This document shows, one piece after another, positions 1,943 through 14,595 of a stretch of 64,000 bases of DNA. The translations under genes were made by a program, and so were the position numbers. Location of the stretch: sequence record NC_006883.2; one strand, written 5' to 3'. Below the pieces are notes generated by a model that saw nothing but the letters and a program-made list of their open reading frames with translations, was not told the origin of the DNA and did not search any database. How positions within the stretch are numbered: position 1 is the stretch's first letter; each line of letters opens with the position of its first letter.

Positions 1943-2836
1943 ATGTCGTTTGCTAAACTCAAAAAGCAATCAAAACTAGGCTCTCTTACACAAAAACTTG
2001 TGAAGGAAGTCGAAAAGATGAATAACACAGGTGGTCAAGGTGATGACCGTCTATGGAAACTAGAAGTAGATAAAGGTGGTAACGGTTATGACGTTATTCG
2101 TTTCCTTCCTGCTCCTGATGGTGAAGATCTACCATTTGTAAAGTTATACTCCCACGCCTTCCAAGGTCCTGGTGGATGGTATATCGAGAACTCTCTAACT
2201 ACATTAGGGCAGAAAGATCCAGTATCTGAGTTCAACTCACAACTCTGGAACAATGGAACGGACGCAGGTAAAGATACTGCTCGTAAGCAAAAGCGTAAAC
2301 TTACTTATATCAGCAACATTTATGTTGTAAAAGATCCAGCAAATCCTGAGAACGAAGGTAAGACATTCTTATACAAGTATGGTAAGAAAATCTTTGACAA
2401 ACTAACTGCAGCAATGCAGCCTGAGTTTGAGGATGAGGAAGCAATTGATCCATTCGATTTCTGGCAAGGTGCTAACTTCAAGTTGAAGGCAAAGAACGTT
2501 GCTGGTTATCGTAATTATGACTCTTCTGAGTTCGCTGCCACTAGTGCATTACTAGATGATGACGATGCTATGGAAGCAATCTGGAAAAAGGAGTATTCCT
2601 TAGCAGAATTAGTTGCTACTGATCAGTTTAAGTCATATGATGAACTCAAGACTCGTCTTGGTTATGTTCTTGGCAATAAGCCAGTTCGTAATGATGCTGA
2701 AACTGTAGAGCAAGAAGTTGAAGATGTGAGAGCATCTGCTCCTGTTGTTGAGACAGTAGAATCTGTATCTAGATCTTCTGCTACAGAAGATGAAGATGAT
2801 ACACTATCATACTTTGCTAAACTAGCAGAATCGTGA
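1943..2836 (+). CDS. gp32: Single-stranded DNA-binding protein
   Basis: IRFLPAP, YSHAFQGPGGWYIENSLTTLG, KYGKKIFDK, FDFWQGANFKLK motifs and acidic C-tail (EDEDDTLSYFAKLAES). Confidence 0.97.
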   Translation: MSFAKLKKQSKLGSLTQKLVKEVEKMNNTGGQGDDRLWKLEVDKGGNGYDVIRFLPAPDGEDLPFVKLYSHAFQGPGGWYIENSLTTLGQKDPVSEFNSQLWNNGTDAGKDTARKQKRKLTYISNIYVVKDPANPENEGKTFLYKYGKKIFDKLTAAMQPEFEDEEAIDPFDFWQGANFKLKAKNVAGYRNYDSSEFAATSALLDDDDAMEAIWKKEYSLAELVATDQFKSYDELKTRLGYVLGNKPVRNDAETVEQEVEDVRASAPVVETVESVSRSSATEDEDDTLSYFAKLAES

Positions 2837-2862
2837 TATAATCATATTTTCTAGTTCTTATA

Positions 2863-2885
2863 AGACCCCTTCGGGGGTCTTTTTT
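2863..2885 (+). terminator. Rho-independent terminator between convergent gp32 and gp53
   Basis: AGACCCC-TTCG-GGGGTCT followed by TTTTT. Confidence 0.9.
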
Positions 2886-3609
2886 ATTGCACTAAATTAT
2901 TATTTTCTGTTGATATAAGAGTTTCTGAAATATATTGAGTATTTCTATCATACTTCATGATTCTATTGAAATCATTTATAAACATTTGAACAAACTCTCT
3001 TTTTAGAGGTCTTATCTTTCTTTTTGTTTCATTCTTTAAAGTTTCATATTCATAGTTAGATATTCCAACTACAGGTGAGATTGTTTGTCCTGTATAGGAT
3101 GTTCTCATTCCTCCATTCTCAGAATACCAACTATTAGCAGATCCACCTAATCGTGCGGCAGGTCCATCAATTTTAAAAGGTCTACCGCCAGATACATCAT
3201 GTTCTACTATTTGACCTGCTGGTAATATTAATCGATCATTCTGATCTCTTATTTCTAGAGTTTCATAATGATGAATTGCATTTAATCCTGCAAGACCATA
3301 TTTGTCTTCAGCATATTCATATACCTCTTTATTTGATAGTGGCCACTCATCTCTGATATTGGTTATGCCACAAGAGATAATAACAATATAATCTAAGTTT
3401 GGATCTCCGTAGATATCTTCAGCAACAGTATCAGGTCTAGCACCATCAGCAACTAGAAATACATTAAAAACTGTTGTTTCTTTAGTTAACCAGTCTAATA
3501 TCTTATTTTTACGAAATAGATTTTTTATTAGAACATAATCGGTTGATGATTTTTTATCTAATAATGGTGATGGATACCTTACATTAGGTAAATGTTTTAA
3601 ATATGCCAT
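2884..3609 (-). CDS. gp53: Baseplate wedge subunit
   Basis: MAYLKHLPNVRY, GARPDTVAEDIYGDPNLDYIV (LysM-like), EWPLSN, IHHYET, SNYEYE..KNETKRKI motifs. Confidence 0.9.
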   Translation of the reverse strand: MAYLKHLPNVRYPSPLLDKKSSTDYVLIKNLFRKNKILDWLTKETTVFNVFLVADGARPDTVAEDIYGDPNLDYIVIISCGITNIRDEWPLSNKEVYEYAEDKYGLAGLNAIHHYETLEIRDQNDRLILPAGQIVEHDVSGGRPFKIDGPAARLGGSANSWYSENGGMRTSYTGQTISPVVGISNYEYETLKNETKRKIRPLKREFVQMFINDFNRIMKYDRNTQYISETLISTENNNLVQ

Positions 3610-5606: not shown

Positions 5607-6440
5607 GTGTCAAGACCAAGACCAAAGAAAATATCTCAAATATTACCTAAGTTCCAGAATGTTGCTCAAACTTCTCATTACTTAGTTCAGTTTGGTCTTC
5701 CGAGTTCTGGTAGACTGCGAAGACATTTACAAACTAGAGGTATAGATTCTAGATTCCATTCAGAGGATATAGGATTACTTTGTAATGCTGCTGTTTTACC
5801 TGGATCTAGTTTTGCTACAGAGGTGGTTAATGGTGAATATCAAGGTGTAACTGAAACAGTACCTCATACTAGGAATTTTACAAGAATTAAGTTAGAGTTT
5901 TATGTTGATAATGAATATAAATCTCTTAAGTTCTTAGAACATTGGATGGAGTTTATTACTGGGGCATCATTGACAAGTCCAATGGAAACTGCATATAATT
6001 TTAGATTAAACTATCCAGAACATTATAGATCACAGTCAACAAAAATTATAAAATTTGAAAAAAATTATAGACAAACTCTTGAATATAATTTTAGAGGTTT
6101 ATTTCCCGTTGCATTGGATTCTGTTAGGGTGCAGTATCAAAATTCAACTGTTCTAAAAGCATCTTGTTCTTTTGCCTATGAAAGATATATTTGTGGAAAG
6201 GCAAGTTCTTTCGCTAAAGATCAAGGAAGTGATCAGAATAAAAAATCTATCGATTCTCATAAATTTAATCCTGGTAAATCTGCTAGTATTTTAAATCCAG
6301 GTGTTGCTGGTAATGATCAGAGATTACAAGAATTAAAAGATCCTAACGTATTTAATACTAAATCTAATCTTGCTGCTGGTGCTTATTTTGGAGCTGATCC
6401 TAATATAGGAAATCTTATTAGTGAGGGATATTACGGATGA
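5607..6440 (+). CDS. gp54: Tail tube initiator / baseplate subunit
   Basis: LLCNAAVLPGSSFAT, IKLEFYVD, FLEHWMEFI, FRGLFPVAL..V (gp19/gp54 tube fold). Start moved to GTG 5607; the track start at 5535 overlaps gp4. Confidence 0.7.
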   Translation: MSRPRPKKISQILPKFQNVAQTSHYLVQFGLPSSGRLRRHLQTRGIDSRFHSEDIGLLCNAAVLPGSSFATEVVNGEYQGVTETVPHTRNFTRIKLEFYVDNEYKSLKFLEHWMEFITGASLTSPMETAYNFRLNYPEHYRSQSTKIIKFEKNYRQTLEYNFRGLFPVALDSVRVQYQNSTVLKASCSFAYERYICGKASSFAKDQGSDQNKKSIDSHKFNPGKSASILNPGVAGNDQRLQELKDPNVFNTKSNLAAGAYFGADPNIGNLISEGYYG

Positions 6441-6494: not shown

Positions 6495-7214
6495 ATGCCT
6501 TTACCAAAAATTTCGACTCCTTCTTATGAATTAGTTATTCCTTCTAATAAGAAGAAAATTAAATTTAGACCTTTTTTAGTTAAAGAAGAAAAGGTTTTAA
6601 TTATTGCTATGGAGAGTCAGGATAACAAACAAATAGCAAATGCTATTAAAGATGTTCTTTCTGCTTGTATTTTGACTAGAGGTGTTAAAATTAATGATCT
6701 CTCTACATTTGATATTGAATATCTCTTCCTTAACATTCGTGGTAAGTCTGTTGGAGAAGAAGTTGAAGTTATGGTTACTTGTCCTGATGATGGGGAAACC
6801 CAAGTTCCTACAGTCATTAATTTAGATGATATAAAGGTTCAGGTAAATGATAAACATAGTCAGGATATTGTATTAGATGGTGAGTATACTTTGAGAATGA
6901 AATATCCATCAATGGAAGAGTTTATTAAAACTAATTTCTCTTCTGATGGTGAAGTGGCTGTTGATGATACATTTAAATTGATTGCATCTTGTGTGGAGCA
7001 AGTTTATTCTGAAGAAGAATCTTGGGCTGGTGCTGATTGTACAAAGAAAGAATTGTCTGATTTTGTAGAATCACTTAATTCAAAGCAATTCAAAGATATT
7101 GAAAGATTCTTTGATACTATGCCTAAATTGTCACATACTGTTAAGGTGACTAATCCGAAAACAAAAAAGGAAAATGAAGTTGTGTTGGAGGGATTGCAGA
7201 GTTTTTTCGTATAA
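6495..7214 (+). CDS. gp26: Baseplate hub subunit / assembly chaperone
   Basis: MPLPKISTPSYEL, KFRPFLVKEEKVL, FDIEYLFLNIRGKSVGE, LEGLQSFF motifs. Confidence 0.92.
   Translation: MPLPKISTPSYELVIPSNKKKIKFRPFLVKEEKVLIIAMESQDNKQIANAIKDVLSACILTRGVKINDLSTFDIEYLFLNIRGKSVGEEVEVMVTCPDDGETQVPTVINLDDIKVQVNDKHSQDIVLDGEYTLRMKYPSMEEFIKTNFSSDGEVAVDDTFKLIASCVEQVYSEEESWAGADCTKKELSDFVESLNSKQFKDIERFFDTMPKLSHTVKVTNPKTKKENEVVLEGLQSFFV
7202..7208 (+). other. Candidate -1 ribosomal frameshift heptamer T TTT TTC
   Basis: In X XXY YYZ register with the gp26 frame; the -1 frame is open straight into the gp51 ATG at 7217. Confidence 0.45.
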
Positions 7215-7216
7215 GT

Positions 7217-7390
7217 ATGGCTCATGAAGATCTTGAGTCATACTATAAGATTAATTTTGCATTGATGCAACACCATAAATATAGCTTAACAGAGTTAGAA
7301 AATATGATGCCGTGGGAGAGAGAAATCTATCTCGCTCTTTTACAGCAATATATTGAAGAAGAAAACTTAAAGCAGCAACAAAATGGCTGA
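7217..7390 (+). CDS. gp51: Baseplate hub assembly catalyst (57 aa; not in ORF track)
   Basis: MAHEDLESYYKINFALMQHHKYSLTELENMMPWEREIYLALLQQYIEEENLKQQQNG, read directly from the DNA. Confidence 0.9.
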   Translation: MAHEDLESYYKINFALMQHHKYSLTELENMMPWEREIYLALLQQYIEEENLKQQQNG

Positions 7391-8972
7391 GATAAATTCA
7401 CCAATATCAGGAGGGATACGTGCAGTAAGACGTAACGTTTCTTCTAACATCTTTACGGGTGGTGGTGTCATAAAACAGAAGCAAGATTCTGTAGCATCTA
7501 ATGCGACTTTTAGAAATTCTGTATTGTTGGGAAATATTTCTAAGCAAGTTGATAATGTAAGTGTACAAACTGGTATATTAAATAAGGCATTACAAGTAAT
7601 ATCAGCAAATTTAGCAACTAGTTCTGCTTTAGATAGGAAAAGACAAGAAGCAAATGCTAGGAGAGAGCAACAGTTAATAGAAGGTGGATTAAGGGACGGA
7701 AAAGAAAGAGCGATAGAAAATAATATTCAAAAAGCTCTTATGGCTCCTATTAAGAAAATAGGTGCTAAAGTTCAATTAGGATTGGGTAAATTAATTAATG
7801 TATTCTTTATATTAACTGGTGGTTGGTTAATAAACAAAACTATTGATATGCTTAGAGCTCTAAGTGGTGATAATCAAGAAAAGTTTGTAAAGATAAGGAA
7901 TGATTTAATAAAAGGATTGTTAATTATAACTGGAACAGTTGCACTCTTTACTGCGGCTTTTGGTGGATTAGGTCTAGGTTTAGGTAAACTTGGAATAGCA
8001 TTAGCGACAGTTGCCCTTGGGGGTATGCTTGGAAATCCGTTAATGAAGTTGAAAAATGCCATATTTGGAACGGCTAATAAAGCAAAGGATATGGTTGGTG
8101 GTGCTGCTCCTTCTACAACGGGCGGTTCTAAATCTACGACAACAACACCTGGTAAAGGAAATACTAAGAGTGGAATTAAACCTAAAGGTGGTGGATTAGC
8201 TGCTCCTAGTAAGTTTTCATTATTCATTACTACTATGTTCGGAGCAAAGAACGTATTAGAAGGAAAACCATTTCAATATGAAGTTGTAGATCAAGGATTG
8301 GGGTATGGTGCGGCTAGTGTTGGTGGTATGCTTGGTAGTAAAGTTCCTGGACCTGCTTGGTTTAAGGCACTAGCAGGTGTAGTTACTAGTATAATTTTCT
8401 TTAATGAAGGTTACAAATTTAGGGGTGGAGCTCAAGATGCAATAGGCGAAAAGAAATTAACAGAACTTCAGGAAGATTTGGAATCAGGTGGTATTTCGCC
8501 TGGAATGATGAGTCCTATAACGGATGAAGATTTACTTTATGATCTTGTAGATCAGAGACCACGAAGAGAAGATTTTAAGATAGGTGGAAGTGGAACACGG
8601 GAATATAAGAGAGCTTTAGAAGAATTTGAAGCAGCTAATGGTGCTAGGATATTAGAATTAAAGGGTAGAGTTGACGCACAGAAAAATGAAACTAATATTG
8701 ATCCAGTAGAAAAGCAAGAAGCAAAGATTGAACCATCAACTACTAAAAAGGAACAAACTAAGAATTTATCTAAAGAATTAGGTTCTTTAGAAGAACCTTC
8801 TCCTAGTATAATTCCATTTCCCAGTGGGGGTGAAGGTGCTGATCCTAATGCAGTAGGAGGAAATGTTGCTGCTGGTGGTGTTGGTGGAGGTGTTCCTGTT
8901 ATACCTGCATCAAACAAAGATAATAGTTATGTATTTCTTGCATTCAAAAACTATCAGGTAGTTCCAGGTTAA
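7383..8972 (+). CDS. Tape-measure/baseplate hub-like protein 1
   Basis: Coiled-coil N-half, hydrophobic Gly/Ala helices, low-complexity tail; follows gp26-gp51. Confidence 0.5.
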   Translation: MAEINSPISGGIRAVRRNVSSNIFTGGGVIKQKQDSVASNATFRNSVLLGNISKQVDNVSVQTGILNKALQVISANLATSSALDRKRQEANARREQQLIEGGLRDGKERAIENNIQKALMAPIKKIGAKVQLGLGKLINVFFILTGGWLINKTIDMLRALSGDNQEKFVKIRNDLIKGLLIITGTVALFTAAFGGLGLGLGKLGIALATVALGGMLGNPLMKLKNAIFGTANKAKDMVGGAAPSTTGGSKSTTTTPGKGNTKSGIKPKGGGLAAPSKFSLFITTMFGAKNVLEGKPFQYEVVDQGLGYGAASVGGMLGSKVPGPAWFKALAGVVTSIIFFNEGYKFRGGAQDAIGEKKLTELQEDLESGGISPGMMSPITDEDLLYDLVDQRPRREDFKIGGSGTREYKRALEEFEAANGARILELKGRVDAQKNETNIDPVEKQEAKIEPSTTKKEQTKNLSKELGSLEEPSPSIIPFPSGGEGADPNAVGGNVAAGGVGGGVPVIPASNKDNSYVFLAFKNYQVVPG

Positions 8973-8973
8973 T

Positions 8974-10524
8974 ATGGATCCAACTTCTTTAATTAAATCG
9001 ACTTCTAGTCTTAATAAAATAAGTAGATCCTTTAATGGACTTTCTGCTAGTATTACTCGTTCTAGTTTTTTAACTAGATCTATTGCTAAGACTATTAATG
9101 AAGATAATAGGAGTAAAAAGATTGCTATATCTACTGATGGATCATTCTTTAGAAAAAGAAGAGAGTCTATTCTAAGGAGAAAACGGGAAGAACAGGTGGA
9201 AGCAACTGGAGTATCAGGTGTTCTCAAACAAAAAGGAAAAATTTTAAAAGATACTGGAAAAGGATTTTTAGGTAGAGTACTTAGCTTTATTGGAATAATT
9301 TTATTAGGATTCTTAGTTACTAAACTACCTGCTATTTTAAAAGGTGTTCAGGCACTAATTAAGAGGATTCAACAAGTAGTTGGTATTCTTACTGGTTTTG
9401 TAAATGGAGTAATTGATATATTTGAGGGAATGGGTAAGAAGTTGGATCAGATAATTAGTTTTTTAAATCCTTTTGATAAACTGGGAGAGCAAAAAGAAAG
9501 GACACAGAAGACTGTTGAAGATGTTCAAAGGAAGCAAGCTGGATTGACTAATGGTTTCATTAGTAGTGTTAATAGGTATAAAGATGATTCTGATTTAGAT
9601 GAAATAATAAAAGAAATTGAGGAGAAAAGAAATAGACCTTGGTGGGATCCATTTGGAGTTTTTGATCCTAAAGAAGGAGAGTTAACCGAAAATGATCAAG
9701 AAGATATATATAATTCTTCTAAATCTAATGAAGATAAAGCATGGAATGATTTAAGTCCGAAAGAACAAGAAGAATTTATAAAGAAGAATACCCAAGTAAA
9801 AACGGCAGAAGATATGGGTGTCCTGTCTATGAATAAAGGTGGGGAACTTAAGAAGGGTGAATCAGCAATCGTTGGTGATGATGCCAAAGGTAAGGGTAAA
9901 GATAGGGAATTATTTGTTCCTAATCAAGATGGAATTATTTTTCCAAATAATATAACTGAAAAATTTCTTGAAGCATCTAGTTTCTTAGAATCTAATAAAT
10001 TGAAATCTTCTTTGAAATCAACTGCAGATGAATTTGATCCTACCAATATGATGAAGGGATTTGGTGGTATCATAGGAACTTTGAAAACTGTTAAAGATCC
10101 ATCTAAAGGTCTTTTAAATTTTGGTGAAGAATTAAAAGAATCTCTTAACTCTCAAATGAGTCAGGCAGTAGGTAGTGATGAGAGTCAAAGTTTAATTGAA
10201 TCTTTAAAGGGTATTGGTGATTCACTAATGCCTGAGATGGAATCAGTTGCTAATGAGTTGAAAGGTGTTATTGATACACCAGAAATGCAAGAGACTTTTA
10301 CGAATGTAAAGAAAAGTATGCAAGGTGTTCTTAAAGAGATAACACCAAAGAGAAAGGGTCAAACAATTATGATGCCAGCTCCACAAGGAGGTCAATCTAA
10401 ATCTTCTGGTGGCGGTGGTGGTGCTGCTCTTCCTCCTCCTTCTACATCAGGAGCCGTAAGTGGTGGTGTAAATATAAAGGAATATCATAAACATTTAACA
10501 ACGTTAGTTACATCATATACTTAA
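8974..10524 (+). CDS. Tape-measure/baseplate hub-like protein 2
   Basis: Helical protein with NKGG...AIVGD...RELFVPNQDGIIFPN, a motif common near tape-measure C-termini. Confidence 0.55.
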   Translation: MDPTSLIKSTSSLNKISRSFNGLSASITRSSFLTRSIAKTINEDNRSKKIAISTDGSFFRKRRESILRRKREEQVEATGVSGVLKQKGKILKDTGKGFLGRVLSFIGIILLGFLVTKLPAILKGVQALIKRIQQVVGILTGFVNGVIDIFEGMGKKLDQIISFLNPFDKLGEQKERTQKTVEDVQRKQAGLTNGFISSVNRYKDDSDLDEIIKEIEEKRNRPWWDPFGVFDPKEGELTENDQEDIYNSSKSNEDKAWNDLSPKEQEEFIKKNTQVKTAEDMGVLSMNKGGELKKGESAIVGDDAKGKGKDRELFVPNQDGIIFPNNITEKFLEASSFLESNKLKSSLKSTADEFDPTNMMKGFGGIIGTLKTVKDPSKGLLNFGEELKESLNSQMSQAVGSDESQSLIESLKGIGDSLMPEMESVANELKGVIDTPEMQETFTNVKKSMQGVLKEITPKRKGQTIMMPAPQGGQSKSSGGGGGAALPPPSTSGAVSGGVNIKEYHKHLTTLVTSYT

Positions 10525-14070: not shown

Positions 14071-14595
14071 ATGACAAAACAACCAAGTTGGCAAAAGAGA
14101 CAGGTTGATTCGTTTGGTAATTTTAAGGTTGAATATGGTAATCCATCAAATCATTTGGGTGGACCTGCTGTTTTCAGTCTGATCGGCAATGGTGCTGGTG
14201 GGACTGGTAAACTTGGACTGAGAGAAAGTGGAACTTTTGATATTATCGTTGATCAGACTGTAAAGATTACTGGTGCTGCTAATAATCAGAGACCTGATGG
14301 TGGTAATGGAGTTGAGATTATCTCAATGGAAGGTGGAATTGCTATTAATTGTCAGAAAGGAACTCTTAAGATAAATGCTAAGAACATAGAAATTAATTCA
14401 AATACTAATATAACCTTCAAAGCATCAGAGAAGATTACTCACGATGCTGATCACGTTCATTTTCACGTTAGGGATTTGGATGTAGATCCTGGTAGATTTA
14501 ATGGAAATGTTAAGAGAGGTGATGTTATGGTGAGAGAAATAGGATTCTTATTTACTGCTTACAGTGGTAGCGAAGTTAAGGAGTGGGGAACCTAA
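14071..14595 (+). CDS. Probable gp5 C-terminal beta-helix-like spike piece
   Basis: Alternating beta pattern (IAINCQKGTLKINAKNIEINSNTNITFKASEKITH); directly after gp5. Confidence 0.5.
   Translation: MTKQPSWQKRQVDSFGNFKVEYGNPSNHLGGPAVFSLIGNGAGGTGKLGLRESGTFDIIVDQTVKITGAANNQRPDGGNGVEIISMEGGIAINCQKGTLKINAKNIEINSNTNITFKASEKITHDADHVHFHVRDLDVDPGRFNGNVKRGDVMVREIGFLFTAYSGSEVKEWGT

Follow-up and report, generated by a model that had tools for sequence, protein, structure and literature searches.

The adjacent genes gp26 and gp51 of Prochlorococcus phage P-SSM2 (AY939844.2 / NC_006883.2) very probably constitute one recoded pair, from which two forms of a tail assembly chaperone are made by a −1 shift on the heptamer T TTT TTC. 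The sequence analysed here, referred to as the window, is a stretch of 64,000 nucleotides from this genome, and the finding spans 896 bases of it, which match the P-SSM2 record with 100 % identity and the same coordinates. At the comparative level, the interpretation of gp26 and gp51 as parts of a fusion is supported with high confidence by the sequences of relatives. The idea of a gp26/gp51 chaperone frameshift is in substance already known, having been published in 2022.

All of the features described are on the + strand. The upstream gene, gp26 (6495..7214), encodes 239 aa and would be the short chaperone form (TAC-N); in profile searches it matches PF12322 T4_baseplate (E 6e-77) and phrog_150 (E 3e-82). 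Its 3′ end reads CAG AGT TTT TTC GTA TAA (7197–7214), with a T run at 7202–7207. The heptamer T TTT TTC (7202..7208) is in the X XXY YYZ register and the TAA stop codon (7212..7214) is one codon past it, in agreement with the preliminary description of this DNA. Read in the −1 frame, the same region is TTT TTT CGT ATA AGT ATG GCT and continues directly into gp51, which GenBank and RefSeq annotate as a separate gene of 57 aa (7217..7390, stop codon at 7388–7390). This reading and the absence of an SD before the gp51 ATG had likewise been described, and both are confirmed by the sequence and the list of ORFs; there is no GGAG or GAGG within 15 nt of ATG 7217, the nearest such sequence being GGAGGG at 7186–7191. 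The −1 frame is open from 7178 onwards, through the heptamer and ATG 7217, and is closed upstream by a TGA (7175..7177), therefore a shift that yields the fusion must fall within 7178–7214. The −1-frame extension (7202..7390), made up of FF RIS and the gp51 domain, would be the C-terminal part of the long form (TAC-NC), which is predicted to have 238 + 60 = 298 aa and the junction ..LQSFF-RISMAHEDL.., the same length and junction as had been anticipated for a fusion of about 298 aa.

T6Y heptamers are depleted in the window, with 27 observed against 57 ± 10 expected, and a T6Y heptamer is by itself unremarkable. Within the 64 kb, the T6Y site at 7202 stands alone in lying in register at a real gene's 3′ end and in giving access to a long −1 frame (62 codons). 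RefSeq labels the two genes as gp26 'baseplate hub' (6495–7214) and gp51 'baseplate hub assembly catalyst' (7217–7390). P-SSM2 gp51 matches phrog_634 (E 6e-28) and also the C-terminal positions 239–278 of phrog_150. That a protein of 57 aa matches the last 40 positions of the gp26 family was the first hint that there are fused versions.

Relatives were taken from 80 IMG/VR loci related to P-SSM2 gp26, from relatives of the Aeh1, ACP17, and pf16 proteins, and from annotated isolates; rows from annotated GenBank loci were left out of the alignment. Outside the T4 group, 173 loci gave 136 distinct junctions, with gp26 forming 22 clusters at 70 % identity and 12 at 50 %. It had been proposed that gp51 would stay in the −1 frame relative to gp26 among relatives and that the terminal FF codons of gp26 would stay as TTT TTY. 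For the frame, this is the case in 173/173 loci outside the T4 group, but not in Tevenvirinae proper, which have two separate genes and no frameshift. For the codons it is borne out, as TTC TTC is present in 0/136 junctions, the heptamer being T TTT TTC in 111, T TTT TTT in 24, and T TTT TTG in 1. With neither a variable frame outside the T4 group nor frequent TTC TTC codons among the relatives, the comparison supports the proposal that gp26 and gp51 are a chaperone pair joined by a −1 shift.

The heptamer is present in 169/170 loci and T TTT TTY/G is kept in register in 136/136 distinct junctions, from 12 gp26 clusters below 50 % identity to one another; it is this retention of heptamer and frame across divergent relatives that is looked for in a frameshift of the lambda G/GT type. 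Carriers include cyanophages, Aeh1, nt-1, pf16, ACP17, PhiW-14, and a Rhizobium phage, and the arrangement is also found in the named isolates S-PM2, S-PRM1, 6E35-1b, RHph_I1_9, and RSP15. An intact heptamer and a gp51 in the −1 frame are seen in 78/78 close relatives, with variation at the adjacent wobble positions. The heptamer starts 10, 13 or 31 nt 5′ of the gp26 stop codon (10 nt in 115/136). The open part of the −1 frame begins 34 nt 5′ of the gp26 stop codon in most close relatives, and just 13–16 nt separate the −1 stop from the 0-frame stop in some relatives.

The codon immediately 5′ of the heptamer is AGT, GAT, AAT, TCT, GCT or ACT, encoding Ser, Asp, Asn, Ala or Thr, and its third base is T throughout. 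At other FF dipeptides within gp26 the heptamer configuration is present in 8/154, compared with 136/136 at the junction, and 82 % of junctions have TTC at the Z position, compared with 24 % of Phe codons elsewhere. The constant third-base T across five amino acids, the rarity of the configuration at other FF dipeptides, and the excess of TTC together indicate selection at the nucleotide level. These figures bear on an alternative in which there is no recoding: a free 57 aa gp51 would be made from ATG 7217 by termination–reinitiation, and the heptamer would be a by-product of FF and AT-rich codons. There is a codon bias toward T that is in keeping with this (Phe is encoded by TTT in 76 % of cases, and Ser(AGY), Asp, and Asn by NNT in 73–87 %), however the scarcity of the heptamer at the other FF dipeptides argues against it, and overall this alternative is considered very improbable.

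The start codon of gp51 is also informative in this regard. The −1 frame always encodes a gp51-like domain of 57–71 aa, with the motif NFALMQHHKYSL.E.E.M.PWER.IY. In the P-SSM2-like cluster, ATG heads the −1 ORF in 70/70 distinct junctions, and in 78/78 close relatives this ATG is 5 nt past the start of the gp26 stop codon, a shared spacing that would suit reinitiation, as would the fact that the databases currently keep gp51 as a gene of its own. However, across the relatives the −1 ORF begins without an ATG, GTG or TTG in 51/136 junctions, and four of the twelve clusters are wholly without one; other clades have Leu, Phe or Ile in place of gp51 Met1. The homology in pf16 reaches 5′ beyond the annotated ATG, and in P-SSM2 itself the ATG without an SD is inside a stable predicted hairpin. 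A further argument against a free gp51 is that in T4 the gp51 domain is encoded solely as part of a protein with a gp26-like domain. In Aeh1, ACP17, and S-PRM1 the downstream ORF has been left unannotated. The many relatives without a start codon for the downstream domain, taken with the in-frame equivalent in T4, add support to the reading of gp26 and gp51 as a fusion.

In T4, gp26 and gp51 are transcribed divergently and there is no heptamer. Residues 1–201 of T4 gp51 (249 aa) fall, as gp26 does, in PF12322 (E 8e-55), and T4 gp26 and T4 gp51 align to one another with E 1e-5. Residues 207–246 match P-SSM2 gp51 (blastp, E 9e-6), with the P-SSM2 −1-frame extension aligning to residues of about 198–249. 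T4 gp51 therefore consists of a gp26-like domain (PF12322) followed by a gp51 domain, such that T4 encodes the predicted fusion directly and, on the basis of this homology, T4 gp51 is the in-frame equivalent of the predicted P-SSM2 product. T4 gp51 matches phrog_150 end to end (positions 13 to 280). Matches to phrog_634 start at profile position 56 for the −1 extensions of Aeh1, ACP17, pf16, nt-1, and the Rhizobium phage, and the Aeh1 extension also matches phrog_150 from position 231, from which it follows that the junction is colinear with T4 gp51. Membership of the P-SSM2 pair in the gp26/gp51 family is thus seen on both sides of the junction, in the PF12322 and phrog_150 matches upstream and in the homology to the T4 gp51 C-terminus downstream.

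Long-form gp51 is found in about 1,375 records from Tevenvirinae and their neighbours. In a tree of the gp26 family that includes the N-domain of T4 gp51, T4 gp26 and T4 gp51 are sisters with weak support (78/88), both being on long branches. From this sequence comparison, the T4 gp26/gp51 pair is likely to have arisen by duplication within the T-even line.

For P-SSM2, we infer that the shift is made by the ribosome. The majority of ribosomes would stop at TAA 7212 and release gp26 (239 aa, TAC-N), and a minority would slip one base back while two Phe-tRNAs are on T TTT TTC (7202–7208); a tandem slip of these tRNAs on U UUU UUY would account for the shift most simply. The slipped ribosomes would then continue via CGT ATA AGT ATG to make the 298 aa gp26–gp51 fusion (TAC-NC).

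The main rival to a ribosomal frameshift is transcriptional slippage, in which the polymerase adds one U on the T6–T7 run in some transcripts, leading to the same fusion. The homopolymeric T run is the one element that is universally conserved, a T 5′ of the run would lengthen the run in this model as well, and the downstream hairpins are not universal, all of which would be compatible with slippage by the polymerase. However, the run is 6 nt long in 112/136 junctions and 7 nt in 24, and bacterial slippage sites are usually 8–9 nt or longer. In addition, C is favoured at the seventh position against the codon bias, which shortens the run, and the one relative with T TTT TTG has the heptamer of the annotated ribosomal shift in phage P2. 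The flanking elements, an SD-like motif 10 nt away from the heptamer and a hairpin 5 nt away from it, are of the kind that stimulates ribosomal shifts, and synonymous change is suppressed at both. RNA contigs from four RNA-seq runs cross the junction without indels and contain no inserted U, although such contigs are uninformative for rare forms, being able neither to show rare slippage nor to prove that there is a single transcript. Transcriptional slippage is therefore regarded as improbable, and the ribosomal −1 frameshift is preferred.

In the −1 signal of E. coli dnaX there is an SD-like element ~10 nt 5′, the heptamer A AAA AAG, and a hairpin 5–6 nt 3′. P-SSM2 would have a comparable three-part layout, although with U UUU UUC as the heptamer, with stimulators that are candidates, and with a hairpin that is clade-specific. 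The SD-like GGAGGG (7186..7191) is separated from the heptamer by a spacer of 10 nt. Averaged over the 136 junctions, complementarity to the anti-SD has a sharp peak at −17 to −14 relative to the heptamer. The GAG codon at 7188 has a synonymous diversity of 0.09, although 71 % of the Glu codons elsewhere in gp26 are GAA; against this, the SD-like motif coincides with conserved Glu/Lys-Gly codons.

The predicted RNA hairpin (7214..7244) has 11 bp + 2 bp, starts 5 nt 3′ of the heptamer, contains ATG 7217, and has a folding energy of −15.6 kcal/mol (z −4.1). In 65 P-SSM2-like sequences the synonymous diversity has its minimum for the locus at 7200–7249 (0.14–0.22, compared with a mean of 0.33). 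In 31 close relatives, 93.5 % of cells in the hairpin are paired, and the covariation test on the same 31 counted a single compensated pair against 12 A.C mismatches, which gives no covariation support. As covariation is almost nil, the stimulators are put forward by inference. A hairpin with another sequence is present at the same place in S-PM2 (z −6.5), and hairpins are also present in S-PRM1, ACP17, and some marine clades; no significant downstream hairpin was found in nt-1, pf16, Aeh1, PhiW-14 or the Rhizobium phage. The search of Rfam returned only a sub-threshold miRNA-like match, which reflects the hairpin. Both the SD-like element and the hairpin are found in P-SSM2 and in the cyanophage clade, at places where synonymous change is suppressed, and it is probable that in P-SSM2 they aid the slip, the GGAGGG acting from 10 nt 5′ and the hairpin from 5 nt 3′. 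The same hairpin would bury the annotated gp51 ATG.

The AF2 model of gp26 (pLDDT 84.5) was compared with 48,161 chains in a structural search independent of Foldseek. Residues 1–90 matched the HK97 tail assembly chaperone 2ob9 with Z 7.6–7.9, 3fgx with 7.6, and 3klu with 7.3, the next match being at 4.7; these Z values are borderline by the tool's own calibration. The three best matches of gp26, to 2ob9, 3fgx, and 3klu (B. subtilis prophage protein YqbN), cover most of the target, and the model is suggestive of a TAC fold for the N-part of gp26. The AF2 model of a T4-type gp51 (pLDDT 87.6) has a gp26-like order of elements followed by three C-terminal helices. With this model the TAC-fold match was not reproduced, the best results being generic helical matches to the three C-terminal helices. 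Searches with Foldseek returned nothing at E ≤ 0.001 for either model (gp26, E 0.7), and a sequence-profile search of the PDB linked no solved structure. Comparison of the gp26 profile with lambda G and P2 E by hhalign found no detectable homology (probability of 0.18 for lambda G), therefore gp26 resembles these proteins in architecture and, tentatively, in fold.

The genes on either side of the pair are also relevant. Upstream, a gene annotated as hypothetical (5607..6440) encodes a tube-fold protein (gp54/gp19-like), which matches phrog_45 tail tube (E 2e-40) and PF23849 (E 1e-20); in nt-1, pf16, and Aeh1 the gene at this position carries a gp54 or tail tube annotation. A complex prediction for this protein with the gp51 domain scored 0.00 with low pLDDT, which is evidence neither way. 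Downstream, the preliminary description had regarded the next genes as tape-measure-like. This is weakly backed: a 516 aa ORF matches phrog_4372 at E 0.002, and a 529 aa ORF (7383..8972) has one weak Atlas lead, PF25671 T4_Tape_measure (score 0.88), however neither of these ORFs has a Pfam match and the 529 aa ORF is also without a PHROG match. No tape measure protein was identified when NCBIfam and Pfam were searched with loose thresholds. On position and these weak leads, the downstream ORFs are candidates for the tape measure.

A role for the two forms can be suggested by analogy with lambda G/GT and with T4 gp26/gp51 genetics. The N-part that is common to both forms would hold the tape measure or hub, the C-part with its three helices would bring in tube or hub proteins, and neither chaperone form would be retained in the virion. 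In T4, gp26 and gp51 have been described as hub assembly chaperones, with gp51 needed for assembly and absent from the particle (Leiman et al., 2010, PMC3004832).

The resemblance to lambda G/GT lies in there being a short and a long form with a common N-terminus and in the position of the P-SSM2 pair just 5′ of the presumed tape measure and beside the tube-fold gene. It differs in the heptamer, which is G GGA AAG in lambda, and in the length of gp26, which is about 100 aa longer than G. A parallel with P2 E/E+E′ had also been drawn and it holds, in that the RefSeq record of this myovirus gives gene E a −1 shift on T TTT TTG, directly 5′ of the tape measure gene T, and the relative with an identical T TTT TTG is the Rhizobium phage. 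In contrast to gp26, to which it has no detected homology, P2 E is only 91 aa. Replacement of the frameshift by two domain-sharing genes, as in T4, is seen in gp143/gp144 of Bacillus phage 0305phi8-36, a two-gene tail chaperone without a frameshift (Hardies et al., 2007, PMC2147016), although those proteins are unrelated and P-SSM2 keeps the frameshift layout.

The preliminary description knew of no account of a gp26/gp51 frameshift in T4-like phages, however the idea is preceded by the work of Vladimirov, Gautam and Davidson (Virology 2022, PMID 34826709), which is cited for the identification of gp26/gp51 as the T4-like tail assembly chaperones (in PMC12846349 and PMC10274946). As related in the PRFect paper, the 2022 work found that some T4-like phages use one short and one long fused gene with no frameshift, and a 2025 paper on Pseudomonas phage Adele speaks of poly-T as known −1 signals in the 'TAC-N genes of T4-like phages'. 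The T4-like chaperones of the 2022 work belong to the same families as those of P-SSM2 (PF12322, phrog_150, and phrog_634) and nothing essential differs; both the frameshift and the two-gene arrangements were observed among the relatives examined here.

For the biology, these results extend a known rule, that of conserved recoding in tail chaperone genes, and do not establish a new one. The gp26/gp51 pair, both members of which count as 'core' genes, would be the long-missing tail assembly chaperone of the T4-like cyanophages, and the gp51 'baseplate hub assembly catalyst' would be reread as the C-terminal domain of a recoded long gp26 instead of a free 57 aa protein. In public records, including the RefSeq record for P-SSM2, gp26 and gp51 are not linked to one another, and the second ORF is missing from the annotation of several genomes. 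As a consequence of the two-gene annotation, gene counts, core-genome tables, and proteomic searches would miss the 298 aa product. The residual value of the analysis is therefore in the correction of the annotation for P-SSM2 and several other genomes, and in two side leads.

These two leads may go beyond what has been published, which is put forward tentatively. The first is the dnaX-like three-part signal in the Kyanoviridae, in the order GGAGGG, 10 nt, T TTT TTC, 5 nt, hairpin, which would hide a pseudo-start for gp51. The second is a shift without a heptamer in the Ackermannviridae. In relatives from this family (Kuttervirus, Limestonevirus, and Taipeivirus) a −1 shift would have to fall within 10–13 nt, ..GAA ATT TTC ATT TAA, which contain no X XXY YYZ heptamer; if a fusion is made there, it would therefore have to be by a single-tRNA U UUC slip or by another non-canonical event. 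Among the existing annotations, the GenBank record of one Acinetobacter phage already names gp51 'tape measure protein assembly chaperone'.

Runs of the T6Y type, to which the T TTT TTC at the gp26 end (7202-7208) belongs, are depleted in the window: across both strands of its whole length 27 are observed, whereas dinucleotide shuffles predict 57 +/- 10. The count was at least 27 in all 100 of the 100 shuffles. A second heptamer, A AAA AAG (7163-7169, + strand), is in the gp26 register 39 nt 5′ of T TTT TTC. A AAA AAG is a classic slippery site of bacteria. A -1 shift here would give four codons, followed by the TGA at 7175-7177. This heptamer looks accidental, because its Lys codons are not kept in the relatives.

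The gp26 homologues of the Ackermannviridae loci examined, from Salmonella phage Maynard (L186), Dickeya phage Ds3CZ (L187), Klebsiella phage May (L188), and L180-L182, end in GAA ATT TTC ATT TAA, with the stop only 10-13 nt beyond the opening of the -1 frame. The product of that frame is a gp51-like domain (SMPWHLDLL), which in Maynard and May is without a start codon. As the gp26 end of these loci lacks an X XXY YYZ heptamer and carries only a run of four T residues, a non-canonical -1 event seems to be needed, for which a U UUC slip is a candidate. In contrast to these loci, Ralstonia phage RSP15, likewise of the Ackermannviridae, has a canonical T TTT TTT. The gp51-like domain is also absent from the annotation of Maynard and May.

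In T4, gp26 (2492-3118 of comparison locus L081) retains the FF pair in its C-terminus, EFFELL, and has no heptamer because these residues are encoded as TTC TTT (GAG TTC TTT GAG). The pattern is consistent with the slip site having been lost once the long form had its own gene.

Gp51-like -1 ORFs are absent from the deposited annotations of Aeh1 (L083, 2705-2887), ACP17 (L084, 2750-2923), and S-PRM1 (L173, 2199-2396), where the region 3′ of gp26 is shown as an intergenic gap.

Upstream of gp26, the ORF at 5607-6440 (+ strand) is, on its matches to phrog_45 (E 2e-40) and PF23849, a tail-tube-fold protein, despite being annotated ‘hypothetical protein’. In nt-1, pf16, and Aeh1, the corresponding position is occupied by the gene annotated as gp54 or as tail tube. 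From the cyanophages through the phages of Vibrio and Pseudomonas, the gene order remains tube-like gene, gp26, gp51 domain, large ORF. Directly 3′ of the gp26/gp51 pair, P-SSM2 has two adjoining ORFs of 529 and 516 aa (7383-10524), whereas S-PM2 has one far longer ORF (3,504 nt) at this position; either P-SSM2 ORF, or both jointly, are candidates for the tape measure. Located after the gp5-like hub/lysozyme gene, a 174-aa ORF (14071-14595) has weak, sub-threshold matches to DUF3540 and to DUF2345, a domain of the VgrG C-terminal type, and may encode a spike-tip accessory protein.
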